This document shows positions 1 through 64,000 of a stretch of DNA of 64,000 bases, one piece after another. The stretch is taken from the NCBI GenBank assembly GCA_965202585.1, contig OZ241826.1:91388001-91452000 (forward strand), written 5' to 3'. Position 1 is the stretch's first letter; every line of letters starts with the position of its first letter. This stretch comes from Thalia democratica. Taxonomy: Eukaryota. A model generated the notes under the pieces. That model was not told where the DNA came from. It worked only from the letters and a program-made list of their open reading frames with translations, and made no database searches. The position numbers and the translations under genes are program-made.

Positions 1-210
1 AATTTAAACACTGTGAGTTTATTGAAAATAAATACGACTTACGCGCAAAATAAAAAAACAGAAACAGTTGTACAAATTTAGAAACATTCATTTTACTAAA
101 GTTTAAACTAAAGTTTTAAAAATGTTGTTGAAAACAAAAAAATATAAAATACGCAATCGTTTTGTGCAAATAAATGCCAGTTTATAGTATGATGATATAG
201 TTGCCAGTTG

Positions 211-216
211 TTTATT
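211..216 (-). terminator. Polyadenylation signal AATAAA (representative; present in all units)
   Basis: tttatt on + strand, about 30 nt after the TAA of the terminal exon; conserved in A, B, C and D. Confidence 0.6.
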
Positions 217-246
217 GAGAATAAAAGAAAATTGGGCTTCATGCAA

Positions 247-828
247 TTAGTTTAGTTGAAATTTTAAGAGTTTATGAAGTAAAATAACGATACGAGTTGC
301 ATGGAAGCTGAAAAAACAAAAAATACTGATTAAATTTAGAAAAATTCACTTTCTTTTCGTTTTGGTGTCGAACTGAATTTTCAGCATCTTCATGATCAGG
401 TTCCTGTTGCTCATCTTCTTCAGGTTTTTGCTCAGCTTCTTGTAAAACGTCAGCTCGCCGTTCCGAGACTCGTAGTAGCGGTTGAGCAGGGCGAGAACGG
501 ACAGGCCGAGCATGCACACAGTGAACACCACGCACACGATCATGCACGCGACGAAGAACACTTCGAAGTCCAAAAAGTCCGTTATCTTCGTCGCCTCCCT
601 ACTTTCAGTCATGACCATGTGTCTCAGCTGGTCGTCGAGCTTTTTCTTCGTGTGCTCGTCCTGGAGAGATATGTCGAAAAGTGTCGACCTCATCATTTGT
701 TTCAGCTGCGCCACTCCGCTGTAGTCCAAAGATGGCATGGAGGCGAGCAAGTGGGCGTAAAGGTTCTTGAAGGTCATCGCGGCCGTGCTGTCTTGCTTCA
801 TGTCCTTTTCCGGCGCCTTCGGCAGCAT
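247..828 (-). CDS. Copy 1 (A1): uncharacterised single-pass membrane protein, 179 aa spliced model join(350..828,247..307)
   Basis: Codons ending mostly in G/C (CTG CCG AAG GCG...); TM segment FEVFFVACMIVCVVFTVCMLGLSVLALL; intron 308-349; start ATG uncertain (828 or 801). Confidence 0.72.
308..349 (-). other. 42-nt spliceosomal intron (GTGAAT...TTTTTTCAG); same offset in every unit, 40 nt in copies 47 and 54, donor lost in A3 copies
   Basis: GT donor, poly-T + CAG acceptor; GT/AG kept in diverged copy 47 despite internal indels. Confidence 0.75.
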
Positions 829-887
829 CTGCGGCTTGATCTTGCGTTTACCAAAATCATTAAAAAATTGTGTCCGCAAATTTGCAT
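798..887 (-). other. Upstream overlapping ORF of family A (29 aa, MQICGHNFLMILVNARSSRRCCRRRRKRT); its TGA overlaps an in-frame ATG (ATGA)
   Basis: ATGs at 887 and 860 are out of frame with the main ORF; stop 800..798 overlaps ATG 801..799. Confidence 0.5.
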
Positions 888-957
888 AATTCTCTTCTTT
901 TCGAATAATTTCGCTCTCTCCTTCTTAATTTTGCACACAAATTCACACCTCCAACCG

Positions 958-977
958 AACTGACGCTTATATATACG
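958..977 (-). promoter_or_regulatory. Putative core promoter: TATATAAG (A1) or palindromic CGTATATATACG (other copies) next to TCAGTT
   Basis: Sequence match only; TCAGTT is too close to the TATA to be its canonical initiator. Confidence 0.4.
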
Positions 978-996
978 AGCTCCGGCATAGACACTT

Positions 997-1203
997 TGAT
1001 AAGAAGAGAAGAGGCGTTCAGCATTATCAATAAAAACACGGCCTCCCAACAGTGACGAAACGCATTGATTCTCATGTGTCTAAATATATTTGTATACAAA
1101 GGTAAAATCAACAGACAATAGCGACTTAGCGACTTGGCGTGCTTGGCCATAATAGCACATTAGATGTCTTATTGTAAGCTTATTTTTAAATTAGAACTGA
1201 TAA
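997..1203. promoter_or_regulatory. Upstream region with three TGATAA (GATA-type) motifs at 997, 1024 (reverse) and 1198, plus the GCGACTTR mini-repeat at 1121-1145
   Basis: Motifs read directly; a GATAA core persists at the 1198-equivalent site in B/C/D (AGATAA); function inferred. Confidence 0.33.
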
Positions 1204-1449
1204 AATTTAAACACTGTGAGTTTATTGAAAATAAATACGACTTACGCGCAAAATAAAAAAACAGAAACAGTTGTACAAATTTAGAAACATTCATTTTACT
1301 AAAGTTTAAACTAAAGTTTTAAAAATGTTGTTGAAAACAAAAAAATATAAAATACGCAATCGTTTTGTGCAAATAAATGCCAGTTTATAGTATGATGATA
1401 TAGTTGCCAGTTGTTTATTGAGAATAAAAGAAAATTGGGCTTCATGCAA

Positions 1450-2031
1450 TTAGTTTAGTTGAAATTTTAAGAGTTTATGAAGTAAAATAACGATACGAGT
1501 TGCATGGAAGCTGAAAAAACAAAAAATACTGATTAAATTTAGAAAAATTCACTTTCTTTTCGTTTTGGTGTCGAACTGAATTTTCAGCATCTTCATGATC
1601 AGGTTCCTGTTGCTCATCTTCTTCAGGTTTTTGCTCAGCTTCTTGTAAAACGTCAGCTCGCCGTTCCGAGACTCGTAGTAGCGGTTGAGCAGGGCGAGAA
1701 CGGACAGGCCGAGCATGCACACAGTGAACACCACGCACACGATCATGCACGCGACGAAGAACACTTCGAAGTCCAAAAAGTCCGTTATCTTCGTCGCCTC
1801 CCTACTTTCAGTCATGACCATGTGTCTCAGCTGGTCGTCGAGCTTTTTCTTCGTGTGCTCGTCCTGGAGAGATATGTCGAAAAGTGTCGACCTCATCATT
1901 TGTTTCAGCTGCGCCACTCCGCTGTAGTCCAAAGATGGCATGGAGGCGAGCAAGTGGGCGTAAAGGTTCTTGAAGGTCATCGCGGCCGTGCTGTCTTGCT
2001 TCATGTCCTTTTCCGGCGCCTTCGGCAGCAT
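1450..2031 (-). CDS. Copy 2 (A1), 179 aa spliced model
   Basis: Same as copy 1, offset 1203. Confidence 0.72.
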
Positions 2032-2652
2032 CTGCGGCTTGATCTTGCGTTTACCAAAATCATTAAAAAATTGTGTCCGCAAATTTGCATAATTCTCTTC
2101 TTTTCGAATAATTTCGCTCTCTCCTTCTTAATTTTGCACACAAATTCACACCTCCAACCGAACTGACGCTTATATATACGAGCTCCGGCATAGACACTTT
2201 GATAAGAAGAGAAGAGGCGTTCAGCATTATCAATAAAAACACGGCCTCCCAACAGTGACGAAACGCATTGATTCTCATGTGTCTAAATATATTTGTATAC
2301 AAAGGTAAAATCAACAGACAATAGCGACTTAGCGACTTGGCGTGCTTGGCCATAATAGCACATTAGATGTCTTATTGTAAGCTTATTTTTAAATTAGAAC
2401 TGATAAAATTTAAACACTGTGAGTTTATTGAAAATAAATACGACTTACGCGCAAAATAAAAAAACAGAAACAGTTGTACAAATTTAGAAACATTCATTTT
2501 ACTAAAGTTTAAACTAAAGTTTTAAAAATGTTGTTGAAAACAAAAAAATATAAAATACGCAATCGTTTTGTGCAAATAAATGCCAGTTTATAGTATGATG
2601 ATATAGTTGCGAATTGTTTATTGAGAATAAAAGAAAATTGGGCTTCATTCAG

Positions 2653-3234
2653 TTAGTTTAGTTGAAATTTTAAGAGTTTATGAAGTAAAATAACGATACG
2701 AGTTGCATGGAAGCTGAAAAAACAAAAAATACTGATTAAATTTAGAAAAATTCACTTTCTTTTCGTTTTGGTGTCGAACTGAATTTTCAGCATCTTCATG
2801 ATCAGGTTCCTGTTGCTCATCTTCTTCAGGTTTTTGCTCAGCTTCTTGTAAAACGTCAGCTCGCCGTTCCGAGACTCGTAGTAGCGGTTGAGCAGGGCGA
2901 GAACGGACAGGCCGAGCATGCACACAGTGAACACCACGCACACGATCATGCACGCGACGAAGAACACTTCGAAGTCCAAAAAGTCCGTTATCTTCGTCGC
3001 CTCCCTACTTTCAGTCATGACCATGTGTCTCAGCTGGTCGTCGAGCTTTTTCTTCGTGTGCTCGTCCTGGAGAGATATGTCGAAAAGTGTCGACCTCATC
3101 ATTTGTTTCAGCTGCGCCACTCCGCTGTAGTCCAAAGATGGCATGGAGGCGAGCAAGTGGGCGTAAAGGTTCTTGAAGGTCATCGCGGCCGTGCTGTCTT
3201 GCTTCATGTCCTTTTCCGGCGCCTTCGGCAGCAT
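2653..3234 (-). CDS. Copy 3 (A1), 179 aa spliced model
   Basis: Same protein as copy 1. Confidence 0.72.
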
Positions 3235-3855
3235 CTGCGGCTTGATCTTGCGTTTACCAAAATCATTAAAAAATTGTGTCCGCAAATTTGCATAATTCTC
3301 TTCTTTTCGAATAATTTCGCTCTCTCCTTCTTAATTTTGCACACAAATTCACACCTCCAACCGAACTGACGCTTATATATACGAGCTCCGGCATAGACAC
3401 TTTGATAAGAAGAGAAGAGGCGTTCAGCATTATCAATAAAAACACGGCCTCCCAACAGTGACGAAACGCATTGATTCTCATGTGTCTAAATATATTTGTA
3501 TACAAAGGTAAAATCAACAGACAATAGCGACTTAGCGACTTGGCGTGCTTGGCCATAATAGCACATTAGATGTCTTATTGTAAGCTTATTTTTAAATTAG
3601 AACTGATAAAATTTAAACACTGTGAGTTTATTGAAAATAAATACGACTTACGCGCAAAATAAAAAAACAGAAACAGTTGTACAAATTTAGAAACATTCAT
3701 TTTACTAAAGTTTAAACTAAAGTTTTAAAAATGTTGTTGAAAACAAAAAAATATAAAATACGCAATCGTTTTGTGCAAATAAATGCCAGTTTATAGTATG
3801 ATGATATAGTTGCCAGTTGTTTATTGAGAATAAAAGAAAATTGGGCTTCATGCAA

Positions 3856-4437
3856 TTAGTTTAGTTGAAATTTTAAGAGTTTATGAAGTAAAATAACGAT
3901 ACGAGTTGCATGGAAGCTGAAAAAACAAAAAATACTGATTAAATTTAGAAAAATTCACTTTCTTTTCGTTTTGGTGTCGAACTGAATTTTCAGCATCTTC
4001 ATGATCAGGTTCCTGTTGCTCATCTTCTTCAGGTTTTTGCTCAGCTTCTTGTAAAACGTCAGCTCGCCGTTCCGAGACTCGTAGTAGCGGTTGAGCAGGG
4101 CGAGAACGGACAGGCCGAGCATGCACACAGTGAACACCACGCACACGATCATGCACGCGACGAAGAACACTTCGAAGTCCAAAAAGTCCGTTATCTTCGT
4201 CGCCTCCCTACTTTCAGTCATGACCATGTGTCTCAGCTGGTCGTCGAGCTTTTTCTTCGTGTGCTCGTCCTGGAGAGATATGTCGAAAAGTGTCGACCTC
4301 ATCATTTGTTTCAGCTGCGCCACTCCGCTGTAGTCCAAAGATGGCATGGAGGCGAGCAAGTGGGCGTAAAGGTTCTTGAAGGTCATCGCGGCCGTGCTGT
4401 CTTGCTTCATGTCCTTTTCCGGCGCCTTCGGCAGCAT
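3856..4437 (-). CDS. Copy 4 (A1), 179 aa spliced model
   Basis: Same protein as copy 1. Confidence 0.72.
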
Positions 4438-5058
4438 CTGCGGCTTGATCTTGCGTTTACCAAAATCATTAAAAAATTGTGTCCGCAAATTTGCATAATT
4501 CTCTTCTTTTCGAATAATTTCGCTCTCTCCTTCTTAATTTTGCACACAAATTCACACCTCCAACCGAACTGACGCTTATATATACGAGCTCCGGCATAGA
4601 CACTTTGATAAGAAGAGAAGAGGCGTTCAGCATTATCAATAAAAACACGGCCTCCCAACAGTGACGAAACGCATTGATTCTCATGTGTCTAAATATATTT
4701 GTATACAAAGGTAAAATCAACAGACAATAGCGACTTAGCGACTTGGCGTGCTTGGCCATAATAGCACATTAGATGTCTTATTGTAAGCTTATTTTTAAAT
4801 TAGAACTGATAAAATTTAAACACTGTGAGTTTATTGAAAATAAATACGACTTACGCGCAAAATAAAAAAACAGAAACAGTTGTACAAATTTAGAAACATT
4901 CATTTTACTAAAGTTTAAACTAAAGTTTTAAAAATGTTGTTGAAAACAAAAAAATATAAAATACGCAATCGTTTTGTGCAAATAAATGCCAGTTTATAGT
5001 ATGATGATATAGTTGCGAATTGTTTATTGAGAATAAAAGAAAATTGGGCTTCATTCAG

Positions 5059-5640
5059 TTAGTTTAGTTGAAATTTTAAGAGTTTATGAAGTAAAATAAC
5101 GATACGAGTTGCATGGAAGCTGAAAAAACAAAAAATACTGATTAAATTTAGAAAAATTCACTTTCTTTTCGTTTTGGTGTCGAACTGAATTTTCAGCATC
5201 TTCATGATCAGGTTCCTGTTGCTCATCTTCTTCAGGTTTTTGCTCAGCTTCTTGTAAAACGTCAGCTCGCCGTTCCGAGACTCGTAGTAGCGGTTGAGCA
5301 GGGCGAGAACGGACAGGCCGAGCATGCACACAGTGAACACCACGCACACGATCATGCACGCGACGAAGAACACTTCGAAGTCCAAAAAGTCCGTTATCTT
5401 CGTCGCCTCCCTACTTTCAGTCATGACCATGTGTCTCAGCTGGTCGTCGAGCTTTTTCTTCGTGTGCTCGTCCTGGAGAGATATGTCGAAAAGTGTCGAC
5501 CTCATCATTTGTTTCAGCTGCGCCACTCCGCTGTAGTCCAAAGATGGCATGGAGGCGAGCAAGTGGGCGTAAAGGTTCTTGAAGGTCATCGCGGCCGTGC
5601 TGTCTTGCTTCATGTCCTTTTCCGGCGCCTTCGGCAGCAT
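5059..5640 (-). CDS. Copy 5 (A1), 179 aa spliced model
   Basis: Same protein as copy 1. Confidence 0.72.
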
Positions 5641-6261
5641 CTGCGGCTTGATCTTGCGTTTACCAAAATCATTAAAAAATTGTGTCCGCAAATTTGCATA
5701 ATTCTCTTCTTTTCGAATAATTTCGCTCTCTCCTTCTTAATTTTGCACACAAATTCACACCTCCAACCGAACTGACGCTTATATATACGAGCTCCGGCAT
5801 AGACACTTTGATAAGAAGAGAAGAGGCGTTCAGCATTATCAATAAAAACACGGCCTCCCAACAGTGACGAAACGCATTGATTCTCATGTGTCTAAATATA
5901 TTTGTATACAAAGGTAAAATCAACAGACAATAGCGACTTAGCGACTTGGCGTGCTTGGCCATAATAGCACATTAGATGTCTTATTGTAAGCTTATTTTTA
6001 AATTAGAACTGATAAAATTTAAACACTGTGAGTTTATTGAAAATAAATACGACTTACGCGCAAAATAAAAAAACAGAAACAGTTGTACAAATTTAGAAAC
6101 ATTCATTTTACTAAAGTTTAAACTAAAGTTTTAAAAATGTTGTTGAAAACAAAAAAATATAAAATACGCAATCGTTTTGTGCAAATAAATGCCAGTTTAT
6201 AGTATGATGATATAGTTGCGAATTGTTTATTGAGAATAAAAGAAAATTGGGCTTCATTCAG

Positions 6262-6843
6262 TTAGTTTAGTTGAAATTTTAAGAGTTTATGAAGTAAAAT
6301 AACGATACGAGTTGCATGGAAGCTGAAAAAACAAAAAATACTGATTAAATTTAGAAAAATTCACTTTCTTTTCGTTTTGGTGTCGAACTGAATTTTCAGC
6401 ATCTTCATGATCAGGTTCCTGTTGCTCATCTTCTTCAGGTTTTTGCTCAGCTTCTTGTAAAACGTCAGCTCGCCGTTCCGAGACTCGTAGTAGCGGTTGA
6501 GCAGGGCGAGAACGGACAGGCCGAGCATGCACACAGTGAACACCACGCACACGATCATGCACGCGACGAAGAACACTTCGAAGTCCAAAAAGTCCGTTAT
6601 CTTCGTCGCCTCCCTACTTTCAGTCATGACCATGTGTCTCAGCTGGTCGTCGAGCTTTTTCTTCGTGTGCTCGTCCTGGAGAGATATGTCGAAAAGTGTC
6701 GATCTCATCATTTGTTTCAGCTGCGCCACTCCGCTGTAGTCCAAAGATGGCATGGAGGCGAGCAAGTGGGCGTAAAGGTTCTTGAAGGTCATCGCGGCCG
6801 TGCTGTCTTGCTTCATGTCCTTTTCCGGCGCCTTCGGCAGCAT
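6262..6843 (-). CDS. Copy 6 (A1), 179 aa spliced model
   Basis: Same protein; one private synonymous SNP (AGG>AGA) near 6702. Confidence 0.72.
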
Positions 6844-7464
6844 CTGCGGCTTGATCTTGCGTTTACCAAAATCATTAAAAAATTGTGTCCGCAAATTTGC
6901 ATAATTCTCTTCTTTTCGAATAATTTCGCTCTCTCCTTCTTAATTTTGCACACAAATTCACACCTCCAACCGAACTGACGCTTATATATACGAGCTCCGG
7001 CATAGACACTTTGATAAGAAGAGAAGAGGCGTTCAGCATTATCAATAAAAACACGGCCTCCCAACAGTGACGAAACGCATTGATTCTCATGTGTCTAAAT
7101 ATATTTGTATACAAAGGTAAAATCAACAGACAATAGCGACTTAGCGACTTGGCGTGCTTGGCCATAATAGCACATTAGATGTCTTATTGTAAGCTTATTT
7201 TTAAATTAGAACTGATAAAATTTAAACACTGTGAGTTTATTGAAAATAAATACGACTTACGCGCAAAATAAAAAAACAGAAACAGTTGTACAAATTTAGA
7301 AACATTCATTTTACTAAAGTTTAAACTAAAGTTTTAAAAATGTTGTTGAAAACAAAAAAATATAAAATACGCAATCGTTTTGTGCAAATAAATGCCAGTT
7401 TATAGTATGATGATATAGTTGCGAATTGTTTATTGAGAATAAAAGAAAATTGGGCTTCATTCAG

Positions 7465-8046
7465 TTAGTTTAGTTGAAATTTTAAGAGTTTATGAAGTAA
7501 AATAACGATACGAGTTGCATGGAAGCTGAAAAAACAAAAAATACTGATTAAATTTAGAAAAATTCACTTTCTTTTCGTTTTGGTGTCGAACTGAATTTTC
7601 AGCATCTTCATGATCAGGTTCCTGTTGCTCATCTTCTTCAGGTTTTTGCTCAGCTTCTTGTAAAACGTCAGCTCGCCGTTCCGAGACTCGTAGTAGCGGT
7701 TGAGCAGGGCGAGAACGGACAGGCCGAGCATGCACACAGTGAACACCACGCACACGATCATGCACGCGACGAAGAACACTTCGAAGTCCAAAAAGTCCGT
7801 TATCTTCGTCGCCTCCCTACTTTCAGTCATGACCATGTGTCTCAGCTGGTCGTCGAGCTTTTTCTTCGTGTGCTCGTCCTGGAGAGATATGTCGAAAAGT
7901 GTCGACCTCATCATTTGTTTCAGCTGCGCCACTCCGCTGTAGTCCAAAGATGGCATGGAGGCGAGCAAGTGGGCGTAAAGGTTCTTGAAGGTCATCGCGG
8001 CCGTGCTGTCTTGCTTCATGTCCTTTTCCGGCGCCTTCGGCAGCAT
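7465..8046 (-). CDS. Copy 7 (A1), 179 aa spliced model
   Basis: Same protein as copy 1. Confidence 0.72.
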
Positions 8047-8667
8047 CTGCGGCTTGATCTTGCGTTTACCAAAATCATTAAAAAATTGTGTCCGCAAATT
8101 TGCATAATTCTCTTCTTTTCGAATAATTTCGCTCTCTCCTTCTTAATTTTGCACACAAATTCACACCTCCAACCGAACTGACGCTTATATATACGAGCTC
8201 CGGCATAGACACTTTGATAAGAAGAGAAGAGGCGTTCAGCATTATCAATAAAAACACGGCCTCCCAACAGTGACGAAACGCATTGATTCTCATGTGTCTA
8301 AATATATTTGTATACAAAGGTAAAATCAACAGACAATAGCGACTTAGCGACTTGGCGTGCTTGGCCATAATAGCACATTAGATGTCTTATTGTAAGCTTA
8401 TTTTTAAATTAGAACTGATAAAATTTAAACACTGTGAGTTTATTGAAAATAAATACGACTTACGCGCAAAATAAAAAAACAGAAACAGTTGTACAAATTT
8501 AGAAACATTCATTTTACTAAAGTTTAAACTAAAGTTTTAAAAATGTTGTTGAAAACAAAAAAATATAAAATACGCAATCGTTTTGTGCAAATAAATGCCA
8601 GTTTATAGTATGATGATATAGTTGCCAGTTGTTTATTGAGAATAAAAGAAAATTGGGCTTCATGCAA

Positions 8668-9249
8668 TTAGTTTAGTTGAAATTTTAAGAGTTTATGAAG
8701 TAAAATAACGATACGAGTTGCATGGAAGCTGAAAAAACAAAAAATACTGATTAAATTTAGAAAAATTCACTTTCTTTTCGTTTTGGTGTCGAACTGAATT
8801 TTCAGCATCTTCATGATCAGGTTCCTGTTGCTCATCTTCTTCAGGTTTTTGCTCAGCTTCTTGTAAAACGTCAGCTCGCCGTTCCGAGACTCGTAGTAGC
8901 GGTTGAGCAGGGCGAGAACGGACAGGCCGAGCATGCACACAGTGAACACCACGCACACGATCATGCACGCGACGAAGAACACTTCGAAGTCCAAAAAGTC
9001 CGTTATCTTCGTCGCCTCCCTACTTTCAGTCATGACCATGTGTCTCAGCTGGTCGTCGAGCTTTTTCTTCGTGTGCTCGTCCTGGAGAGATATGTCGAAA
9101 AGTGTCGACCTCATCATTTGTTTCAGCTGCGCCACTCCGCTGTAGTCCAAAGATGGCATGGAGGCGAGCAAGTGGGCGTAAAGGTTCTTGAAGGTCATCG
9201 CGGCCGTGCTGTCTTGCTTCATGTCCTTTTCCGGCGCCTTCGGCAGCAT
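8668..9249 (-). CDS. Copy 8 (A1), 179 aa spliced model
   Basis: Same protein as copy 1. Confidence 0.72.
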
Positions 9250-9870
9250 CTGCGGCTTGATCTTGCGTTTACCAAAATCATTAAAAAATTGTGTCCGCAA
9301 ATTTGCATAATTCTCTTCTTTTCGAATAATTTCGCTCTCTCCTTCTTAATTTTGCACACAAATTCACACCTCCAACCGAACTGACGCTTATATATACGAG
9401 CTCCGGCATAGACACTTTGATAAGAAGAGAAGAGGCGTTCAGCATTATCAATAAAAACACGGCCTCCCAACAGTGACGAAACGCATTGATTCTCATGTGT
9501 CTAAATATATTTGTATACAAAGGTAAAATCAACAGACAATAGCGACTTAGCGACTTGGCGTGCTTGGCCATAATAGCACATTAGATGTCTTATTGTAAGC
9601 TTATTTTTAAATTAGAACTGATAAAATTTAAACACTGTGAGTTTATTGAAAATAAATACGACTTACGCGCAAAATAAAAAAACAGAAACAGTTGTACAAA
9701 TTTAGAAACATTCATTTTACTAAAGTTTAAACTAAAGTTTTAAAAATGTTGTTGAAAACAAAAAAATATAAAATACGCAATCGTTTTGTGCAAATAAATG
9801 CCAGTTTATAGTATGATGATATAGTTGCCAGTTGTTTATTGAGAATAAAAGAAAATTGGGCTTCATGCAA

Positions 9871-10452
9871 TTAGTTTAGTTGAAATTTTAAGAGTTTATG
9901 AAGTAAAATAACGATACGAGTTGCATGGAAGCTGAAAAAACAAAAAATACTGATTAAATTTAGAAAAATTCACTTTCTTTTCGTTTTGGTGTCGAACTGA
10001 ATTTTCAGCATCTTCATGATCAGGTTCCTGTTGCTCATCTTCTTCAGGTTTTTGCTCAGCTTCTTGTAAAACGTCAGCTCGCCGTTCCGAGACTCGTAGT
10101 AGCGGTTGAGCAGGGCGAGAACGGACAGGCCGAGCATGCACACAGTGAACACCACGCACACGATCATGCACGCGACGAAGAACACTTCGAAGTCCAAAAA
10201 GTCCGTTATCTTCGTCGCCTCCCTACTTTCAGTCATGACCATGTGTCTCAGCTGGTCGTCGAGCTTTTTCTTCGTGTGCTCGTCCTGGAGAGATATGTCG
10301 AAAAGTGTCGACCTCATCATTTGTTTCAGCTGCGCCACTCCGCTGTAGTCCAAAGATGGCATGGAGGCGAGCAAGTGGGCGTAAAGGTTCTTGAAGGTCA
10401 TCGCGGCCGTGCTGTCTTGCTTCATGTCCTTTTCCGGCGCCTTCGGCAGCAT
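9871..10452 (-). CDS. Copy 9 (A1), 179 aa spliced model
   Basis: Same protein as copy 1. Confidence 0.72.
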
Positions 10453-11073
10453 CTGCGGCTTGATCTTGCGTTTACCAAAATCATTAAAAAATTGTGTCCG
10501 CAAATTTGCATAATTCTCTTCTTTTCGAATAATTTCGCTCTCTCCTTCTTAATTTTGCACACAAATTCACACCTCCAACCGAACTGACGCTTATATATAC
10601 GAGCTCCGGCATAGACACTTTGATAAGAAGAGAAGAGGCGTTCAGCATTATCAATAAAAACACGGCCTCCCAACAGTGACGAAACGCATTGATTCTCATG
10701 TGTCTAAATATATTTGTATACAAAGGTAAAATCAACAGACAATAGCGACTTAGCGACTTGGCGTGCTTGGCCATAATAGCACATTAGATGTCTTATTGTA
10801 AGCTTATTTTTAAATTAGAACTGATAAAATTTAAACACTGTGAGTTTATTGAAAATAAATACGACTTACGCGCAAAATAAAAAAACAGAAACAGTTGTAC
10901 AAATTTAGAAACATTCATTTTACTAAAGTTTAAACTAAAGTTTTAAAAATGTTGTTGAAAACAAAAAAATATAAAATACGCAATCGTTTTGTGCAAATAA
11001 ATGCCAGTTTATAGTATGATGATATAGTTGCCAGTTGTTTATTGAGAATAAAAGAAAATTGGGCTTCATGCAA

Positions 11074-53097: not shown

Positions 53098-53601
53098 TTA
53101 GTTAAATATTAAGAGTCTATGAAGTAAAATAACAAAAAGAGTTGCATGGAAGCTGAAAAAACAAAAAATACTGATTAAATTTAGAAACGTTCACTTTCTT
53201 TTCGTTTTGGTGTCGAACTGAATTTTCAGCATCTTCATGATCAGGTTCCTGTTGCTCATCTTCTTCAGGTTCTTGCTCAGCTTCTTGTAAAACGTCAGCT
53301 CGCCGTTCCGAGACTCGTAGTAGCGGTTGAGCAGGGCGAGAACGGACAGGCCGAGCATGCACACGGTGAACACCACGCACACGATCATGCACGCGACGAA
53401 GAACACTTCGAAGTCTAAAAAGTCCGTTATCTTCGTCGCGTCCCTACTTGCAGTCATGACCATGTGTCTCAGCTGGTCGTCGAGCTTTTTCTTCGTGTTC
53501 TCGTCCTGGAGAGATATGTCGAAAAGTGTCGACCTCATCATTTGTTTCAACTGCGCCACTCCGCTGCAACTTCGGCTTGATCTTGCGTTTACCAAAATCA
53601 T
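53098..53601 (-). CDS. Copy 45 (C), 153 aa spliced model (tail FHATLFVILLHRLLIFN)
   Basis: 1-nt deletion near end of terminal exon shortens tail by 2 aa. Confidence 0.63.
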
Positions 53602-54280
53602 TAAAAATTGTGTCTGAAAATTTGCATAAATCTCTTCTTTTCGAATAATTTCGCTCTCTCCTTCTTAATTTTTGCACACAAATTCACACCTCCAACCGAA
53701 CTGACGCGTATATATACGAGCTTCGGCATGGACACTTTGATGAGAAAAAAAGAGGCGTTTAGCATTATCGGTAAAAACACGGCCTCCAAACAGTGACGAA
53801 ACGCATTGATTACTTATGTGTCTAAATATGTTTGTATACAAAGGTAAAATCAACAGACAATAGCGACTTAGCGACTTGGCCATACTAGCACATTAGATGT
53901 CTTATTGTAAGTTTTTTAACTAAGAACAGATAAAATTTAAACACTGTGAGTTTATTGAAAAGAAAATACGACTTACATGCAAAATAAAAAAACAAGAAAC
54001 AGTTATACAAATTTAGAAACATTTACTTTTTTTTATTTTTTTCAAACTTTAAACTTGAAACTTTCAAGCAAAAAATTTAAACCTGTGATTTAGGTTTTTT
54101 GTGTTTTGTATTTATAAATAACAACAAATTGTTAAACTGAAGTATTAAAAAGGTTGTTAAAAATAATAAATTATAAAATACGCAAACGTTTTGAGCAATT
54201 AATTGCCAGTTTATAGTATGATGATAAAGTTGCCAGTTGTTTATTGAGAATAAAAGGTAATTGAGCTTCATGCAATTAGT

Positions 54281-54811
54281 TTAGTTAAATATTAAGAGTC
54301 TATGAAGTAAAATAACAAAAAGAGTTGCATGGAAGCTGAAAAAACAAAAAATACTGATTAAATTTAGAAACGTTCACTTTCTTTTCGTTTTGGTGTCGAA
54401 CTGAATTTTCAGCATCTTCATGATCAGGTTCCTGTTGCTCATCTTCTTCAGGTTCTTGCTCAGCTTCTTGTAAAACGTCAGCTCGCCGTTCCGAGACTCG
54501 TAGTAGCGGTTGAGCAGGGCGAGAACGGACAGGCCGAGCATGCACACGGTGAACACCACGCACACGATCATACACGCGACGAAGAACACTTCGAAGTCTA
54601 AAAAGTCCGTTATCTTCGTCGCCTCCCTGCTTTCAGTCATGACCATGTGTCTCAGCTGGTCGTCGAGCTTTTTCTTCGTGTTCTCGTCCTGGAGAGATAT
54701 GTCGAAAAGTGTCGACCTCATCATTTGTTTCAGCTGCGCCACTCCGCTGCAACTTCGGCTTGATATTGCGTTTACCAAAATCATTAAAAAATTGTTTCCG
54801 CAAATTTGCAT
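54281..54811 (-). CDS. Copy 46 (D): 162 aa from MQICG or 153 aa from MILV (54784)
   Basis: Most diverged upstream region; core frame intact. Confidence 0.63.
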
Positions 54812-55464
54812 AAATCTCTTCTTTTCGAATAACTTCGCTCTCTCCTTCTTAATTTTTGCACAAAAATTCACACCTCCAACCGAACTGACGCGTATATATA
54901 CGAGCTTCTGCATGGAGACCTTGATAAGAAAAGAAGAGGCGTTCAGCATTAGCGATAAATACACGGCCTCCAAACAGTGACGAAACGCATTGATTTCTTA
55001 TGTGATTAATATATTTATATACAAAGGTAAAATCAACAGACAATTGCGACTTAGCGACTTGGCGTACTTGGCCATAATAGCACATTAGATGTCTTATTGT
55101 AAGTTTTTTTAACTAAGAACAGATAAAATTTAAACACTGTGAGTTTATTGTAAAAAAAAAACGACTTACATGCAAGATTAAAAACAGAAACAATTATACA
55201 AATTAAGAAACATTCACTTTCTTTTATTTTTTAAAGTTTTTACTTGAAACTTTCAAGCAAAAAATTTAAACCTGTGATTTAGGTTTTTTGTGTTTTGCTT
55301 TTATAAATAACAATAAATTATCAAACTGAAGTATTAAAAAAGTTGTTAAAAATAAAAAAGTACAAAATACGCAAACGTTTTGTGCAAATAATTGCCAGTT
55401 TATAGTATGATGATATAGTTGCGAATTGTTTATTGAGAATAAAAGAAAATTGGGCTTCATGCAG

Positions 55465-55972
55465 TTAGTTTAGTTGAAATTTTAAGAGTTTATGAAGTAA
55501 AAGAACTATACGAGTTGCATGAAAGCTAAAAAAAAAACTTTTCAATCGAATTTAGAAACGTTCACTTTCTTTTCGTTTTGGTGTCGAACTGAATTTTCAG
55601 CATCTTCATGATCAGGTTCCTGTTGCTCATCTTCTTCAGGTTCTTGCTCAGCTTCTTGTAAAACGTCAGCTCGCCGTTCCGAGACTCGTAGTAGCGGTTG
55701 AGCAGGGCGAGAACGGACAGGCCGAGCATGCACACGGTGAACACCACGCACACGATCATGCACACGACGAAGAACACTTCGAAGTCTAAAAAGTCAGTTA
55801 TCTTCGTCGCGTCCCTGCTTCCAGTCATGACCATGTGTCTCAGCTGGTCGTCGAGCTTTTTCTTCGTGTTCTCGTCCTGGAGAGATATGTCGAAAAGTGT
55901 CGACCTCATCATTTGTTTCAACTGCGCCACTCCGCTGCATCTGCGGCTTGATCTTGCGTTTACCAAAATCAT
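55465..55972 (-). CDS. Copy 47 (B body, D-type 3' end), 155 aa spliced model, 40-nt intron 55526-55565
   Basis: GTGAAC...TTTTTAG intron; terminal exon differs by TTC>TTT, ATC>ATA, ATT>CTT. Confidence 0.65.
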
Positions 55973-56650
55973 TAAAATTGTGTCTGAAAATTTGCATAAA
56001 TCTCTTCTTTTCGAATAATTTCGCTCTCTCCTTCTTAATTTTTGCACACAAATTCACACCTCCAACCGAACTGACGCGTATATATACGAGCTTCGGCATG
56101 GACGCTTTGATGAGAATAAAAGAGGCGTTCAGCATTATCGGTAAAAACACGGCCTCCAAACAGTGACGAAACGCATTGATTACTTATGTGTCTAAATATG
56201 TTTGTATACAAAGGTAAAATCAACAGACAATAGCGACTTAGCGACTTGGCGTACTTGGCCATACTAGCACATTAGATGTCTTATTGTAAGCTTTTTAACT
56301 AAGAACAGATAAAATTTTAACGCTGTGAGTTTATTGAAAATAAATACGACTTAAGCGCAAAATAAAAAAACAGAAACAGTTATACAAATTTAAAAACATT
56401 CACTTTATTTTATTTTTTCAAACTTTTAACTTAAAACTTTCAAGCAAAAAATTTAAACTTGTGATTTAGGTTTATTGTGTTTTGCTTTTATAAATAAGAA
56501 TAAACAGTTAAATTGAAGTTTAAAATAATTTTTTTAATAAAAAAACTATAAAATACGCAAACGTTTTGTGCAAATAATTGCCAGTTTATAGTATGATGAT
56601 ATAGTTGCGAATTGTTTATTGAGAATAAAAGAAAATTGGGCTTCATGCAG

Positions 56651-57160
56651 TTAGTTTAGTTGAAACATTAAAAGTTTATGAAGTAAAATAACGATACGAG
56701 TTGCATAGAAGCTGAAAAAACAAAAAATACTGATTAGATTTAGAAACATTCACTTTCTTTTCGTTTTGGTGTCAAACTGAATTTTCAGCATCTTCATGAT
56801 CAGGTTCCTGTTGCTCATCTTCTTCAGGTTCTTGCTCAGCTTCTTGTAAAACGTCAGCTCGCCGTTCCGAGACTCGTAGTAGCGGTTGAGCAGGGCGAGA
56901 ACGGACAGGCCGAGCATGCACACGGTGAACACCACGCACACGATCATGCACACGACGAAGAACACTTCGAAGTCTAAAAAGTCCGTTATCTTCGTCGCAT
57001 CCCTACTTCCAGTCATGACCATGTGTCTCAGCTGGTCGTCGAGCTTTTTCTTCGTGTTCTCGTCCTGGAGAGATATGTCGAAAAGTGTCGACCTCATCAT
57101 TTGTTTCAACTGCGCCACTCCGCTGCATCTGCGGCTTGATCTTGCGTTTACCAAAATCAT
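56651..57160 (-). CDS. Copy 48 (B), 155 aa spliced model
   Basis: As copy 40. Confidence 0.65.
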
Positions 57161-57838
57161 TAAAATTGTGTCTGAAAATTTGCATAAATCTCTTCTTTTC
57201 GAATAATTTCGCTCTCTCCTTCTTAATTTTTGCACACAAATTCACACCTCCAACCGAACTGACGCGTATATATACGAGCTTCGGCATGGACGCTTTGATG
57301 AGAAAAAAAGAGGCGTTCAGCATTATCGGTAAAAACACGGCCTCCAAACAGTGACGAAACGCATTGATTACTTATGTGTCTAAATATGTTTGTATACAAA
57401 GGTAAAATCAACAGACAATAGCGACTTAGCGACTTGGCGTACTTGGCCATACTAGCACATTAGATGTCTTATTGTAAGCTTTTTAACTAAGAACAGATAA
57501 AATTTTAACGCTGTGAGTTTATTGAAAATAAATACGACTTACGCGCAAAATAAAAAAACAGAAACAGTTATACAAATTTAAAAACATTCACTTTATTTTA
57601 TTTTTTCAAACTTTTAACTTAAAACTTTCAAGCAAAAAATTTAAACTTGTGATTTAGGTTTATTGTGTTTTGCTTTTATAAATAAGAATAAACAGTTAAA
57701 TTGAAGTTTAAAATAATTTTTTTAATAAAAAAACTATAAAATACGCAAACGTTTTGTGCAAATAATTGCCAGTTTATAGTATGATGATATAGTTGCGAAT
57801 TGTTTATTGAGAATAAAAGAAAATTGGGCTTCATGCAG

Positions 57839-58348
57839 TTAGTTTAGTTGAAATATTAAAAGTTTATGAAGTAAAATAACGATACGAGTTGCATAGAAGC
57901 TGAAAAAACAAAAAATACTGATTAGATTTAGAAACATTCACTTTCTTTTCGTTTTGGTGTCAAACTGAATTTTCAGCATCTTCATGATCAGGTTCCTGTT
58001 GCTCATCTTCTTCAGGTTCTTGCTCAGCTTCTTGTAAAACGTCAGCTCGCCGTTCCGAGACTCGTAGTAGCGGTTGAGCAGGGCGAGAACGGACAGGCCG
58101 AGCATGCACACGGTGAACACCACGCACACGATCATGCACACGACGAAGAACACTTCGAAGTCTAAAAAGTCCGTTATCTTCGTCGCATCCCTACTTCCAG
58201 TCATGACCATGTGTCTCAGCTGGTCGTCGAGCTTTTTCTTCGTGTTCTCGTCCTGGAGAGATATGTCGAAAAGTGTCGACCTCATCATTTGTTTCAACTG
58301 CGCCACTCCGCTGCATCTGCGGCTTGATCTTGCGTTTACCAAAATCAT
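57839..58348 (-). CDS. Copy 49 (B), 155 aa spliced model
   Basis: As copy 41. Confidence 0.65.
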
Positions 58349-59026
58349 TAAAATTGTGTCTGAAAATTTGCATAAATCTCTTCTTTTCGAATAATTTCGC
58401 TCTCTCCTTCTTAATTTTTGCACACAAATTCACACCTCCAACCGAACTGACGCGTATATATACGAGCTTCGGCATGGACGCTTTGATGAGAAAAAAAGAG
58501 GCGTTCAGCATTATCGGTAAAAACACGGCCTCCAAACAGTGACGAAACGCATTGATTACTTATGTGTCTAAATACGTTTGTATACAAAGGTAAAATCAAC
58601 AGACAATAGCGACTTAGCGACTTGGCGTACTTGGCCATACTAGCACATTAGATGTCTTATTGTAAGCTTTTTAACTAAGAACAGATAAAATTTTAACGCT
58701 GTGAGTTTATTGAAAATAAATACGACTTACGCGCAAAATAAAAAAACAGAAACAGTTATACAAATTTAAAAACATTCACTTTATTTTATTTTTTCAAACT
58801 TTTAACTTAAAACTTTCAAGCAAAAAATTTAAACTTGTGATTTAGGTTTATTGTGTTTTGCTTTTATAAATAAGAATAAACAGTTAAATTGAAGTTTAAA
58901 ATAATTTTTTTAATAAAAAAACTATAAAATACGCAAACGTTTTGTGCAAATAATTGCCAGTTTATAGTATGATGATATAGTTGCGAATTGTTTATTGAGA
59001 ATAAAATAAAATTGGGCTTCATGCAA

Positions 59027-59536
59027 CTAGTTTAGTTGAAATATTAAGAGTTTATGAAGTAAAATAACGATACGAGTTGCATGGAAGCTGAAAAAACAAA
59101 AAATACTGATTAAATTTAGAAACATTCACTTTCTTTTCGTTTTGGTGTCGAACTGAATTTTCAGCATCTTCATGATCAGGTTCCTGTTGCTCATCTTCTT
59201 CAGGTTCTTGCTCAGCTTCTTGTAAAACGTCAGCTCGCCGTTCCGAGACTCGTAGTAGCGGTTGAGCAGGGCGAGAACGGACAGGCCGAGCATGCACACG
59301 GTGAACACCACGCACACGATCATGCACACGACGAAGAACACTTCGAAGTCTAAAAAGTCCGTTATCTTCGTCGCATCCCTACTTCCAGTCATGACCATGT
59401 GTCTCAGCTGGTCGTCGAGCTTTTTCTTCGTGTTCTCGTCCTGGAGAGATATGTCGAAAAGTGTCGACCTCATCATTTGTTTCAACTGCGCCACTCCGCT
59501 GCATCTGCGGCTTGATCTTGCGTTTACCAAAATCAT
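59027..59536 (-). CDS. Copy 50 (B), 155 aa spliced model
   Basis: Higher-order duplicate of copy 43. Confidence 0.65.
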
Positions 59537-60214
59537 TAAAATTGTGTCTGAAAATTTGCATAAATCTCTTCTTTTCGAATAATTTCGCTCTCTCCTTCTT
59601 AATTTTTGCACACAAATTCACACCTCCAACCGAACTGACGCGTATATATACGAGCTTCGGCATGGACGCTTTGATGAGAAAAAAAGAGGCGTTCAGCATT
59701 ATCGGTAAAAACACGGCCTCCAAACAGTGACGAAACGCATTGATTACTTATGTGTCTAAATATGTTTGTATACAAAGGTAAAATCAACAGACAATAGCGA
59801 CTTAGCGACTTGGCGTACTTGGCCATACTAGCACATTAGATGTCTTATTGTAAGCTTTTTAACTAAGAACAGATAAAATTTTAACGCTGTGAGTTTATTG
59901 AAAATAAATACGACTTACGCGCAAAATAAAAAAACAGAAACAGTTATACAAATTTAAAAACATTCACTTTATTTTATTTTTTCAAACTTTTAACTTAAAA
60001 CTTTCAAGCAAAAAATTTAAACTTGTGATTTAGGTTTATTGTGTTTTGCTTTTATAAATAAGAATAAACAGTTAAATTGAAGTTTAAAATAATTTTTTTA
60101 ATAAAAAAACTATAAAATACGCAAACGTTTTGTGCAAATAATTGCCAGTTTATAGTATGATGATATAGTTGCAAATTGTTTATTGAGAATAAAAGAAAAT
60201 TGGGCTTCATGCAG

Positions 60215-60751
60215 TTAGTTTAGTTGAAACATTAAAAGTTTATGAAGTAAAATAACGATACGAGTTGCATGGAAGCTGAAAAAACAAAAAATACTGATTA
60301 AATTTAGAAACATTCACTTTCTTTTCGTTTTGGTGTCGAACTGAATTTTCAGCATCTTCATGATCAGGTTCCTGTTGCTCATCTTCTTCAGGTTCTTGCT
60401 CAGCTTCTTGTAAAACGTCAGCTCGCCGTTCCGAGACTCGTAGTAGCGGTTGAGCAGGGCGAGAACGGACAGGCCGAGCATGCACACGGTGAACACCACG
60501 CACACGATCATGCACGCGACGAAGAACACTTCGAAGTCTAAAAAGTCCGTTATCTTCGTCGCGTCCCTACTTGCAGTCATGACCATGTGTCTCAGCTGGT
60601 TCTCGAGCTTTTTCTTCGTGTGCTCGTCCTGGAGAGATATGTCGAAAAGTGTCGACCTCATCATTTGTTTCAACTGCGCCACTCCGCTGCAACTTCGGCT
60701 TGATCTTGCGTTTACCAAAATCATTAAAAAATTGTTTCCGCAAATTTGCAT
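60215..60751 (-). CDS. Copy 51 (C), higher-order duplicate of copy 44
   Basis: Offset 8307. Confidence 0.63.
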
Positions 60752-61404
60752 AAATCTCTTCTTTTCGAATAATTTCGCTCTCTCCTTCTTAATTTTTGCA
60801 CACAAATTCACACCTCCAACCGAACTGACGCGTATATATACGAGCTTCGGCATGGACACTTTGATGAGAAAAAAAGAGGCGTTCAGCATTATCGGTAAAA
60901 ACACGGCCTCCAAACAGTGACGAAACGCATTGATTACTTATGTGTCTAAATATGTTTGTATACAAAGGTAAAATCAACAGACAATAGCGACTTAGCGACT
61001 TGGCCATACTAGCACATTAGATGTCTTATTGTAAGTTTTTTTAACTAAGAACAGATAAAGTTTAAACACTGCGAGTTTATTGAAAATAAATACGACTTAC
61101 ATGCAAAATAAAAAAACAAGAAACAGTTATACAAATTTAGAAACATTTACTTTTTTTTATTTTTTTCAAACTTTAAACTTGAAACTTTCAAGCAAAAAAT
61201 TTAAACCTGTGATTTAGGTTTTTTATGTTTTGTATTTATAAATAACAACAAATTGTTAAACTGAAGTGTTAAAAAGGTTGTTAAAAATAATAAATTATAA
61301 AATACGCAAACGTTTTGAGCAATTAATTGCCAGTTTATAGTATGATGATAAAGTTGCCAGTTGTTTATTGAGAATAAAAGGTAATTGAGCTTCATGCAAT
61401 TAGT

Positions 61405-61908
61405 TTAGTTAAATATTAAGAGTCTATGAAGTAAAATAACAAAAAGAGTTGCATGGAAGCTGAAAAAACAAAAAATACTGATTAAATTTAGAAACGTTCA
61501 CTTTCTTTTCGTTTTGGTGTCGAACTGAATTTTCAGCATCTTCATGATCAGGTTCCTGTTGCTCATCTTCTTCAGGTTCTTGCTCAGCTTCTTGTAAAAC
61601 GTCAGCTCGCCGTTCCGAGACTCGTAGTAGCGGTTGAGCAGGGCGAGAACGGACAGGCCGAGCATGCACACGGTGAACACCACGCACACGATCATGCACG
61701 CGACGAAGAACACTTCGAAGTCTAAAAAGTCCGTTATCTTCGTCGCGTCCCTACTTGCAGTCATGACCATGTGTCTCAGCTGGTCGTCGAGCTTTTTCTT
61801 CGTGTTCTCGTCCTGGAGAGATATGTCGAAAAGTGTCGACCTCATCATTTGTTTCAACTGCGCCACTCCGCTGCAACTTCGGCTTGATCTTGCGTTTACC
61901 AAAATCAT
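61405..61908 (-). CDS. Copy 52 (C), higher-order duplicate of copy 45
   Basis: Offset 8307. Confidence 0.63.
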
Positions 61909-62587
61909 TAAAAATTGTGTCTGAAAATTTGCATAAATCTCTTCTTTTCGAATAATTTCGCTCTCTCCTTCTTAATTTTTGCACACAAATTCACACCTCC
62001 AACCGAACTGACGCGTATATATACGAGCTTCGGCATGGACACTTTGATGAGAAAAAAAGAGGCGTTCAGCATTATCGGTAAAAACACGGCCTCCAAACAG
62101 TGACGAAACGCATTGATTACTTATGTGTCTAAATATGTTTGGATACAAAGGTAAAATCAACAGACAATAGCGACTTAGCGACTTGGCCATACTAGCACAT
62201 TAGATGTCTTATTGTAAGTTTTTTAACTAAGAACAGATAAAATTTAAACACTGTGAGTTTATTGAAAAGAAAATACGACTTACATGCAAAATAAAAAAAC
62301 AAGAAACAGTTATACAAATTTAGAAACATTTACTTTTTTTTATTTTTTTCAAACTTTAAACTTGAAACTTTCAAGCAAAAAATTTAAACCTGTGATTTAG
62401 GTTTTTTGTGTTTTGTATTTATAAATAACAACAAATTGTTAAACTGAAGTATTAAAAAGGTTGTTAAAAATAATAAATTATAAAATACGCAAACGTTTTG
62501 AGCAATTAATTGCCAGTTTATAGTATGATGATAAAGTTGCCAGTTGTTTATTGAGAATAAAAGGTAATTGAGCTTCATGCAATTAGT

Positions 62588-63118
62588 TTAGTTAAATATT
62601 AAGAGTCTATGAAGTAAAATAACAAAAAGAGTTGCATGGAAGCTGAAAAAACAAAAAATACTGATTAAATTTAGAAACGTTCACTTTCTTTTCGTTTTGG
62701 TGTCGAACTGAATTTTCAGCATCTTCATGATCAGGTTCCTGTTGCTCATCTTCTTCAGGTTCTTGCTCAGCTTCTTGTAAAACGTCAGCTCGCCGTTCCG
62801 AGACTCGTAGTAGCGGTTGAGCAGGGCGAGAACGGACAGGCCGAGCATGCACACGGTGAACACCACGCACACGATCATACACGCGACGAAGAACACTTCG
62901 AAGTCTAAAAAGTCCGTTATCTTCGTCGCCTCCCTGCTTTCAGTCATGACCATGTGTCTCAGCTGGTCGTCGAGCTTTTTCTTCGTGTTCTCGTCCTGGA
63001 GAGATATGTCGAAAAGTGTCGACCTCATCATTTGTTTCAGCTGCGCCACTCCGCTGCAACTTCGGCTTGATATTGCGTTTACCAAAATCATTAAAAAATT
63101 GTTTCCGCAAATTTGCAT
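62588..63118 (-). CDS. Copy 53 (D), higher-order duplicate of copy 46
   Basis: Offset 8307. Confidence 0.63.
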
Positions 63119-63771
63119 AAATCTCTTCTTTTCGAATAACTTCGCTCTCTCCTTCTTAATTTTTGCACAAAAATTCACACCTCCAACCGAACTGACGCGT
63201 ATATATACGAGCTTCTGCATGGAGACCTTGATAAGAAAAGAAGAGGCGTTCAGCATTAGCGATAAATACACGGCCTCCAAACAGTGACGAAACGCATTGA
63301 TTTCTTATGTGATTAATATATTTATATACAAAGGTAAAATCAACAGACAATTGCGACTTAGCGACTTGGCGTACTTGGCCATAATAGCACATTAGATGTC
63401 TTATTGTAAGTTTTTTTAACTAAGAACAGATAAAATTTAAACACTGTGAGTTTATTGTAAAAAAAAAACGACTTACATGCAAGATTAAAAACAGAAACAA
63501 TTATACAAATTAAGAAACATTCACTTTCTTTTATTTTTTAAACTTTTTACTTGAAACTTTCAAGCAAAAAATTTAAACCTGTGATTTAGGTTTTTTGTGT
63601 TTTGCTTTTATAAATAACAATAAATTATCAAACTGAAGTATTAAAAAAGTTGTTAAAAATAAAAAAGTACAAAATACGCAAACGTTTTGTGCAAATAATT
63701 GCCAGTTTATAGTATGATGATATAGTTGCGAATTGTTTATTGAGAATAAAAGAAAATTGGGCTTCATGCAG

Positions 63772-64000
63772 TTAGTTTAGTTGAAATTTTAAGAGTTTAT
63801 GAAGTAAAAGAACTATACGAGTTGCATGAAAGCTAAAAAAAAAACTTTTCAATCGAATTTAGAAACGTTCACTTTCTTTTCGTTTTGGTGTCGAACTGAA
63901 TTTTCAGCATCTTCATGATCAGGTTCCTGTTGCTCATCTTCTTCAGGTTCTTGCTCAGCTTCTTGTAAAACGTCAGCTCGCCGTTCCGAGACTCGTAGTA
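63772..64000 (-). CDS. Copy 54, partial (3' end only), higher-order duplicate of copy 47
   Basis: Truncated by window edge; 40-nt intron variant. Confidence 0.6.

Follow-up and report, generated by a model that had tools for sequence, protein, structure and literature searches.

Tandem gene arrays of the dosage type include the early histone repeats of sea urchins, the tandem gene arrays of trypanosomatids, and the major sperm protein clusters of nematodes. Tandem coding repeats also make up the Stellate/Su(Ste) system of Drosophila melanogaster. In mammals, macrosatellites such as the D4Z4/DUX4, RS447/USP17, CT47, and TSPY arrays carry open reading frames (ORFs) in their repeats (PMC3018141, PMC4063668). 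Here, we describe an array of 1.2-kb units that fills a 64,000-nucleotide stretch of DNA, referred to below as the window. Its units carry a small gene on the minus strand, which is predicted to encode a single-pass membrane protein. In our view, the balance tips slightly towards a dosage-type, concerted tandem array of a TATA-driven membrane protein gene, in which the differences between unit classes are mostly tolerated variation.

As in the dosage arrays, complete small genes with their own promoter and poly(A) signal lie head to tail, the copies are kept very similar by unequal exchange, and the product is selected while the spacers drift. However, those arrays encode conserved bulk proteins, whereas the protein described here is a lineage-restricted membrane protein with no assigned role, and a fifth of its copies have lost the stop codon and a few are frameshifted. 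With Stellate/Su(Ste), the locus has in common the unit size of about 1.2 kb, the tandem coding repeats, and a related family that shares part of the unit. In contrast to that system, the shared part consists of the promoter and leader and not of the transcribed body. In addition, Stellate is a soluble CK2-beta-like protein, whereas the product of the array has no Pfam match at all; no relationship to CK2-beta or to the dynein intermediate chain of Sdic was found, either as a Pfam family or as a homologue outside the protein's own clusters. The mammalian macrosatellites resemble the locus in that every unit of a satellite-like array contains an ORF and in that copy number varies between individuals or populations. 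They differ in unit size (3-20 kb there, 0.75-1.2 kb here), and at this locus the protein is an orphan membrane protein and a single promoter module is common to several unit bodies. Systems of this kind are known from tandem gene arrays and ORF-bearing macrosatellites, whereas the protein family, the sister arrays (one with a 755-bp period and one without a gene), and the shared promoter module are new. A literature search found no description of this array.

The layout of the array was determined with a 25-mer anchor taken from the first bases of the window. Allowing up to 3 mismatches, the anchor was found 54 times, at spacings of 1096-1211 bp (values of 1203, 1194, 1202, 1210/1211, 1096, 1188, 1182, 1193, and 1186 bp were observed). 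This corresponds to 53 complete units plus a cut unit of 567 bp in head-to-tail arrangement, and both ends of the window fall within the array. A first-pass annotation, made from the sequence alone, had proposed at least 54 copies of a 1.2-kb unit, and this count was confirmed. Tandem Repeats Finder was run with a maximal period of 500 and, therefore, missed the unit; its only report was an 8-mer micro-repeat within some units. The array and its sub-arrays are as follows:

1..64000, gene on the minus strand: tandem array of 53 full units and a 567-bp cut unit, open at both ends
1..12030, minus strand: sub-array A1, units 1-10, 1203 bp, TATA box TATATATAA, ORF of 160 amino acids (aa), or 179 aa with a putative intron
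12031..30049, minus strand: sub-array A2, units 11-25, TATA box TATATATAC; in units 13, 17, and 18, a deletion of 8 bp shifts the frame after codon 11
30050..44533, minus strand: sub-array A3, units 26-37; stop codon TGA changed to AGA in 11 of 12 units, giving a read-through ORF of 193 aa
44534..45629, minus strand: unit 38, 1096 bp, recombinant, without the 104-nt segment; boundary between A and B types
45630..64000, minus strand: sub-array B/C/D, units 39-54, 1182-1193 bp, without the 104-nt segment, with spacer insertions

Units 1-10 and 11-25 differ from one another by a few bases, and all A-type units (1-37) are at least 98.9% alike. The B/C/D units 39-54 are 93-95% identical to the A types, from which they are distinguished by a 104-bp indel beside the start codon and by insertions of about 90 bp in the spacer. 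In units 38-54, the 104 nt following the A-type start codon are missing, and the reading frame is entered from ATGs in the leader, which results in 136 or 145 aa. Stop loss affects units 26 and 28-37 (n = 11). Unit 27 retains the stop codon and has the 8-bp deletion, so that the frameshifted units are 13, 17, 18, and 27 (n = 4). In total, 29 distinct unit sequences are present, several of them 3-6 times. Unit 38 is an A/B recombinant with a B-like 5'-part and an A-like spacer, and units 43-46 are repeated as units 50-53, which reveals a 7-unit duplication. The runs of identical units, the recombinant unit, and the multi-unit duplication show that the array has been shaped by unequal exchange, both of single units and of several units at once. 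The same three features are those of concerted evolution. In the parts that they share, the A and B units within the window resemble one another about as closely as either resembles units of the same type in other lineages.

Relatives of the units were found exclusively on short contigs from marine metagenomes, several of them from Tara Oceans, and many marine metagenome runs contain parts of the unit. The contigs sort into four types, i.e., A, B, E, and the gene-less type F. The anatomy of unit 1, which was used as the reference, is given in the following list:

1120..1135, minus strand: direct repeat AAGTCGCT, two copies, within the GCCAAGTCGC block upstream of the promoter; the block is kept in unit families A, B, E, and F
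967..975, minus strand: TATA box TATATATAA of unit 1, A/C polymorphic at 967
798..887, minus strand: upstream ORF of 29 codons in a different frame; the B and E forms start at its second ATG (ATGATTTT)
346..828, minus strand: main ORF, 160 codons plus TGA (ATG at 828, TGA at 348-346)
721..824, minus strand: 104-nt segment, in A-type units only
484..561, minus strand: membrane helix, residues 90-115, the sole hydrophobic segment
349..483, minus strand: basic tail of 45 residues, net charge +11, ending in KTKRK
308..349, minus strand: putative 42-nt GT..AG intron of the first-pass annotation, the least conserved stretch of the unit
211..216, minus strand: AATAAA, starting 139-141 nt past the stop position in 53 of 53 full units

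The TATA motif, TATATATA followed by A or C, is present in all 53 full units, and the same 53 units have a minus-strand frame that is open through helix and tail as well as an AATAAA signal. The earlier proposal that each unit holds a gene with its own promoter-like region and poly(A) signal thus holds for every full unit. The G+C content is 51% in the coding sequence versus 23-38% in the spacers. The block between the TATA box and the expected transcription start site is nearly invariant across the unit families.

Several additional features of the unit were noted. The GCCAAGTCGC motif block, which is kept in all four unit families, is a candidate factor-binding site, and in several A-type units, including A3 units, the 8-mer AAGTCGCT is present a third time upstream of the promoter (eight sites, among them 29957-29985 and 34769-34797). 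The leaders of units 38, 40-43, 45, 47-50, and 52 (e.g., 45290-45330) read TTTTCAG/ACAC where A-type units have TTTGCGGACAC. The TTTTCAG/A site is present in these 11 B-type units and in the gene-less contig L011 (605-625), and it is missing from the second gene-less contig, L014, and from the other types. It looks like an acceptor followed by A, as described for spliced-leader addition in Oikopleura dioica; this is put forward as an idea only, and use of the site would remove the out-of-frame first ATG. Plus-strand ORFs of 106-156 aa recur antisense to the coding sequence (619-963 and equivalent positions in most units). They start with GTG or TTG and are most likely by-products of lying antisense to the G+C-rich coding sequence; those of 114 aa were rejected as genes on these grounds. 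An origin of the 104-nt segment by internal duplication was also rejected, because only chance matches of 7-8 nt were found elsewhere in the unit.

The metagenome contigs place the window in a wider family. The A-type contigs L001 and L002 are about 93% identical to the A units of the window. The B-type contigs L003, L005, L012, and L013 are 90-95% identical; since they span unit junctions, they confirm the tandem layout independently of this assembly. The E-type contigs L004, L006, L007, L009, and L010 have a period of 753-756 bp and are 78-84% identical to the window. Their product of 121 aa, which is known from metagenome contigs only, has the same helix and tail and starts at ATGATTTT, as in the B forms. 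The junction left by the 104-nt segment is identical in B-type contigs of other lineages that have diverged by 5-10%, and thus both the A and the B state are old. The E type, which serves as an outgroup, likewise lacks the 104 nt, so the segment may be an insertion in A rather than a deletion in B. On contig L008 (523-615), an A-type copy ends inside the conserved tail and is followed by unrelated sequence, which represents either an array edge or a chimeric scaffold. A metagenome scan with the exact 40-mer of the core promoter gave no match, and a scan with a degenerate tail pattern yielded one further B-type contig.

Selection on the coding sequence was quantified in two ways. A comparison of unit 1 with the E-type contig L004 over 79 codons (TKITDF..K) revealed 11 synonymous differences at 50.3 sites and 8 non-synonymous differences at 186.7 sites, corresponding to an omega of 0.17 (binomial p = 5e-4). 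In 20 distinct sequences drawn from the 53 units and 12 metagenome loci, the 7 variable states of the tail were all synonymous, with 0 non-synonymous ones (p = 8e-6), and helix and tail together had 20 synonymous versus 13 non-synonymous states (p = 9e-7). The amino acids of the tail are unchanged in every copy and relative, save the chimeric or edge contig L008. With the same exception, no indel, frameshift, or stop codon was found in the helix or tail of the 53 units and 12 loci, and indels are common elsewhere. Across all comparisons, conservation was highest in the tail (0.96-0.99), lower in the spacers and the N-terminal coding part (0.81-0.95 together, 0.84-0.94 for the spacers), and lowest in the putative intron (0.76-0.87). 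The 42 N-terminal codons, compared between E-type copies, differed about neutrally, with proportions of synonymous (pS) and non-synonymous (pN) differences of 0.08 and 0.07-0.08, respectively. A non-coding satellite would lack constraint that follows the reading frame. The synonymous excess and the freedom from indels instead indicate that helix and tail are under strong purifying selection, that they form the working part of the protein, and that the unit carries a real coding gene and not a captured fragment. By the same measures, the N-terminal region appears to be close to free of constraint.

Next, the C-terminal end of the product was considered. The first-pass annotation had listed product classes of 179, 193, and 155-164 aa together with frameshifted copies. 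These lengths were exactly reproduced when the 42-nt intron was removed, whereas the unspliced frames encode 160, 193, and 136/145 aa. The intron itself fared less well: the acceptor AG is missing in L001 and L002, the donor GT is missing in L004, and the frame of the second exon has an early stop in L005 and is unrecognisable in L004. In contrast, the stop codon directly after KRK is retained in the A, B, and E lineages. The loss of the splice sites and the retention of the stop point to a product that most likely ends at KTKRK, and a core product of 160 aa (A) or 136/145 aa (B/C/D) is more likely than one of 179 aa. On this reading, the 11 A3 units are stop-loss variants in which the KTKRK end is buried, and not a hard-wired isoform. 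In O. dioica, introns of the GA-AG type are frequent and have RNA-seq support, with the reported context AG/GAA (PMC7072748), so a GT to GA change need not fix an unspliced form. The flanks of the GT to GA change in the array do not match this context.

The protein has no signal-like segment and only one hydrophobic helix (residues 90-115). The 15 residues preceding the helix have a net charge of -3 and the 45-residue tail has a net charge of +11 (+1 in its first 15 residues), and from this charge bias the N-terminus is predicted to face the lumen or exterior and the tail the cytosol. Apart from the 11 stop-loss units, every A, B, and E copy ends in K-T-K-R-K-stop, with lysines at -3 and -5. 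A KXKXX-type end on a cytosolic C-terminus is a COPI-dependent signal for retrieval to the endoplasmic reticulum (ER), and the conserved end fits this predicted di-lysine signal. Resident ER proteins with a KKXX or KXKXX signal have in common with the protein a single helix, a predicted cytosolic tail, and lysines at these two positions. They differ in that the tail described here is 45 residues long and invariant throughout and that a signal peptide is missing. Since the tail is long and is invariant over its whole length, it would have to do more than carry a sorting signal. A low-confidence AlphaFold2 single-sequence model consists entirely of helices, including a long one that spans the membrane segment and the tail.

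Database searches agreed with the earlier description of an unrecognised membrane protein. Pfam contained no family above the cut-off and only sub-threshold noise (DUF677, Claudin_2). A word-indexed search of 5.8 billion proteins retrieved only three nameless clusters of self-like metagenome proteins (74-94% identity), and an exhaustive phmmer search of 1.84 billion representative proteins found two of the protein's own near-copies and no other relative. No match above chance was present in the ESM Atlas, and no match was found among the sequences of the Protein Data Bank (PDB). Likewise, no Rfam family and no match to viral contigs were obtained, so that neither Pfam, viral contigs, nor Rfam pointed to an origin from a transposable element or virus. 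A clear match to a known housekeeping or transposable-element protein, which would have spoken against the earlier proposal, was not found. By these searches, the product is an orphan single-pass membrane protein that is matched only by near-copies from marine metagenomes.

The promoter and leader of the unit were found to extend beyond the coding arrays. Two contigs, L011 and L014, were retrieved with a spurious promoter-spanning ORF as bait. They share only unit positions of about 27-352 with the coding units, at 80-82% identity, followed by an unrelated A+T-rich body without a long ORF; the module is located at L011:321-640 and L014:229-557 in these F-type contigs. L011 represents an array edge and comprises an unrelated gene fragment, one unit of 1215 bp, and the start of the next unit. 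The gene fragment (L011:3-185, minus strand) encodes 61 N-terminal aa beside the first gene-less unit and could anchor that array; it has no Pfam match. When the modules of A, B, E, and F units were aligned, near-invariant blocks became apparent, namely the GCCAAGTCGC repeats, AATCAATGCGTTTCG, the region from TATA box to start site, and the leader around the first ATG. The alignment indicates that several unit bodies carry a common promoter and leader module, which is used by three or more types of coding unit and by a tandem family that lacks the gene. In the sequencing runs X1 and X4, the depth over positions 862-1025 (core promoter and leader) exceeded that of the remaining unit by a factor of 3 to almost 50. 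The promoter region was represented by many distinct contigs, with loose ends at 852, 907, and 928, and the X1 loose end at 852 reads into the gene-less F-type body.

In O. dioica, TCTAGA at a distance of 40-50 nt upstream marks 71.6% of male-specific promoters, whereas consensus TATA boxes mark sharp, adult-specific promoters (PMC6389100). TCTAGA is a larvacean element and relevant only if the host is a larvacean; it occurs 0 times on both strands of the 64-kb window, with about 12 occurrences expected by chance. For a larvacean host, the TATA box and the missing TCTAGA would point away from a spermatogenic programme and towards an adult, tissue-specific burst.

The sequencing runs were also used to compare copy number and class composition. 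In X1, contigs identical to unit 1 had a word depth of about 2800-3900 that was flat across gene and spacer. This profile looks like DNA at a very high copy number, as judged from un-normalised word depth. The 104-nt A-only segment (739-820) had a depth of 3320 in X1, versus about 3900 alongside, and of 93.6 in X4, versus about 1950-3200 alongside, and an X4 loose end at this segment reads into the B-type junction. The A-type share of the units is about 85% in X1 and about 3-5% in X4 (runs of two organisms); thus, class composition varies between strains or populations. The only RNA library with array sequence was the metatranscriptome X21, which yielded three contigs that had no splice joint and in which the spacer was as deep as the gene.

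Taken together, the explanation that we favour is the following. Each unit of about 1.2 kb would be a compact TATA-driven gene for a small single-pass membrane protein whose N-terminal part is variable and largely dispensable (17 to about 90 residues) and is followed by a membrane helix and a basic tail of 45 invariant residues. The working product would end at the conserved stop after ...KTKRK, and thus comprise 160 aa (A) or 136/145 aa (B/C/D). Its N-terminus would face the lumen or exterior and its tail the cytosol, and the KXKXX-type end would keep the protein cycling in the ER and early Golgi. The copies would serve dosage, i.e., a large burst of one product from a sharp promoter of the adult type, as in other tandem gene arrays. 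Frameshifts, stop loss, and the 104-nt indel would mostly be tolerated variation in unconstrained parts and not a designed set of isoforms. Because the parts that differ between classes evolve neutrally and the A:B ratio swings between X1 and X4, the data suggest interchangeable or partly decayed variants more than designed isoforms.

Several observations weigh against this explanation. The conserved stop is missing in 11 of 53 full units and 4 are frameshifted, so part of the array does not encode the canonical protein. The equal depth of spacer and gene in X21 makes carry-over of genomic DNA as likely as transcription. The gene-less sister family has the same promoter, which shows that spread of the module does not require the gene. 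The topology, retrieval to the ER, and a role in dosage were all read from sequence, and the structure model is poor (predicted local distance difference test score, pLDDT, 59.7). Finally, the promoter argument assumes a larvacean host. The genome is marine and probably that of a tunicate; its tentative assignment to a larvacean of the Oikopleura kind stems from the marine metagenome matches and the tiny putative intron.

Two other explanations would assign the tandem structure a different role. The array could be a conflict-driven or germline amplicon of the Stellate/Su(Ste), Sdic, or sex-chromosome type, in which an arms race at the gamete level or between drive and suppressor raises copy number and the gene-less family acts as regulator or as a source of small RNAs. 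The homogeneity and high copy number of the array would fit, as would the sharply different class composition of the runs, a unit size close to that of Stellate, and the sister tandem family that shares only promoter and leader, including exact blocks of 20-29 nt. The N-terminal part is indeed fast-evolving, but its omega of about 1 represents relaxed constraint and not demonstrated positive selection, and helix and tail are frozen, unlike typical arms-race proteins. The lack of TCTAGA in 64 kb (about 12 expected; PMC6389100) is a weak point against an amplicon of this type and counts only for a larvacean. A role in host interaction, which the first-pass annotation had also suggested, drew no support from the data. 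We consider this explanation improbable, and to the same degree we doubt that the array is a promoter-bearing satellite, in which the module and the tandem structure are kept or spread, through a chromosomal or RNA role or by selfish spread, with the ORF as a passenger. Such a satellite would account for the presence of the module on at least four unit bodies, one of them without a long ORF, for the excess depth of the module in X1 and X4, and for the spacers in the RNA-library contigs. The array may also occupy a distal position on a chromosome-scale piece whose start is at least 15.56 Mb away; long-period repeats have been reported from such positions in O. dioica (PMC8008620). However, the synonymous excess and the lack of indels in helix and tail across lineages that have diverged by 22% require selection at the protein level, and the coding sequence is set apart from the spacers by its G+C content.

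The remaining explanations concern what the unit classes stand for. Copy-encoded functional isoforms of 179, 193, and 155-164 aa, each with its own role, would require that the 42-nt intron joins a terminal exon and that A3 hard-wires the unspliced form. The sequence GT...T-rich...CAG of 42 nt fits the intron sizes of larvaceans (median 48-51 nt, PMC8008620), and the A and B forms are both old, as judged from the 104-nt junction shared by lineages diverged by 5-10%. Against isoforms speak the acceptor missing in L001/L002, the donor missing in L004, the short or unrecognisable exon-2 frames in L005 and L004, and the fact that the putative intron is the least conserved part of the unit. Splicing would, moreover, delete the conserved C-terminal end, the N-termini of the B types vary in frame and start between lineages, and GA donors are spliced in O. 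dioica (PMC7072748), though the flanks here differ from AG/GAA. We regard isoforms as the least probable of the explanations discussed here. Only marginally more credible, and still a long shot, is a broader picture in which the array belongs, as one of several branches, to a large superfamily of promoter-bearing satellites in a planktonic tunicate. In that case, one conserved TATA and leader module would be combined with three or more versions that encode an orphan ER membrane protein and with one or more that lack the gene, and all of them together would make up a sizeable part of the genome. Either the gene-less and the coding branches would regulate each other in a Stellate/Su(Ste)-like manner, or the coding branches would differ in product by the copy composition of the population.

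The array offers several lines of use. It is abundant enough to be seen in many ocean metagenomes, and since its class composition differs strongly from run to run, it lends itself to use as a marker of population structure. The class variation is a natural experiment on which parts of the protein are needed, and the promoter module on coding and gene-less tandem families is a tractable case of the exchange of regulatory parts between satellites and genes. If expressed, the array would provide a lineage-restricted membrane protein in dozens to probably hundreds of copies in the very compact genome of a marine chordate relative. As a compact genome is under pressure to shed DNA, an expressed array of this kind would suggest that the product is needed in unusually large amounts, or that a conflict is at work.

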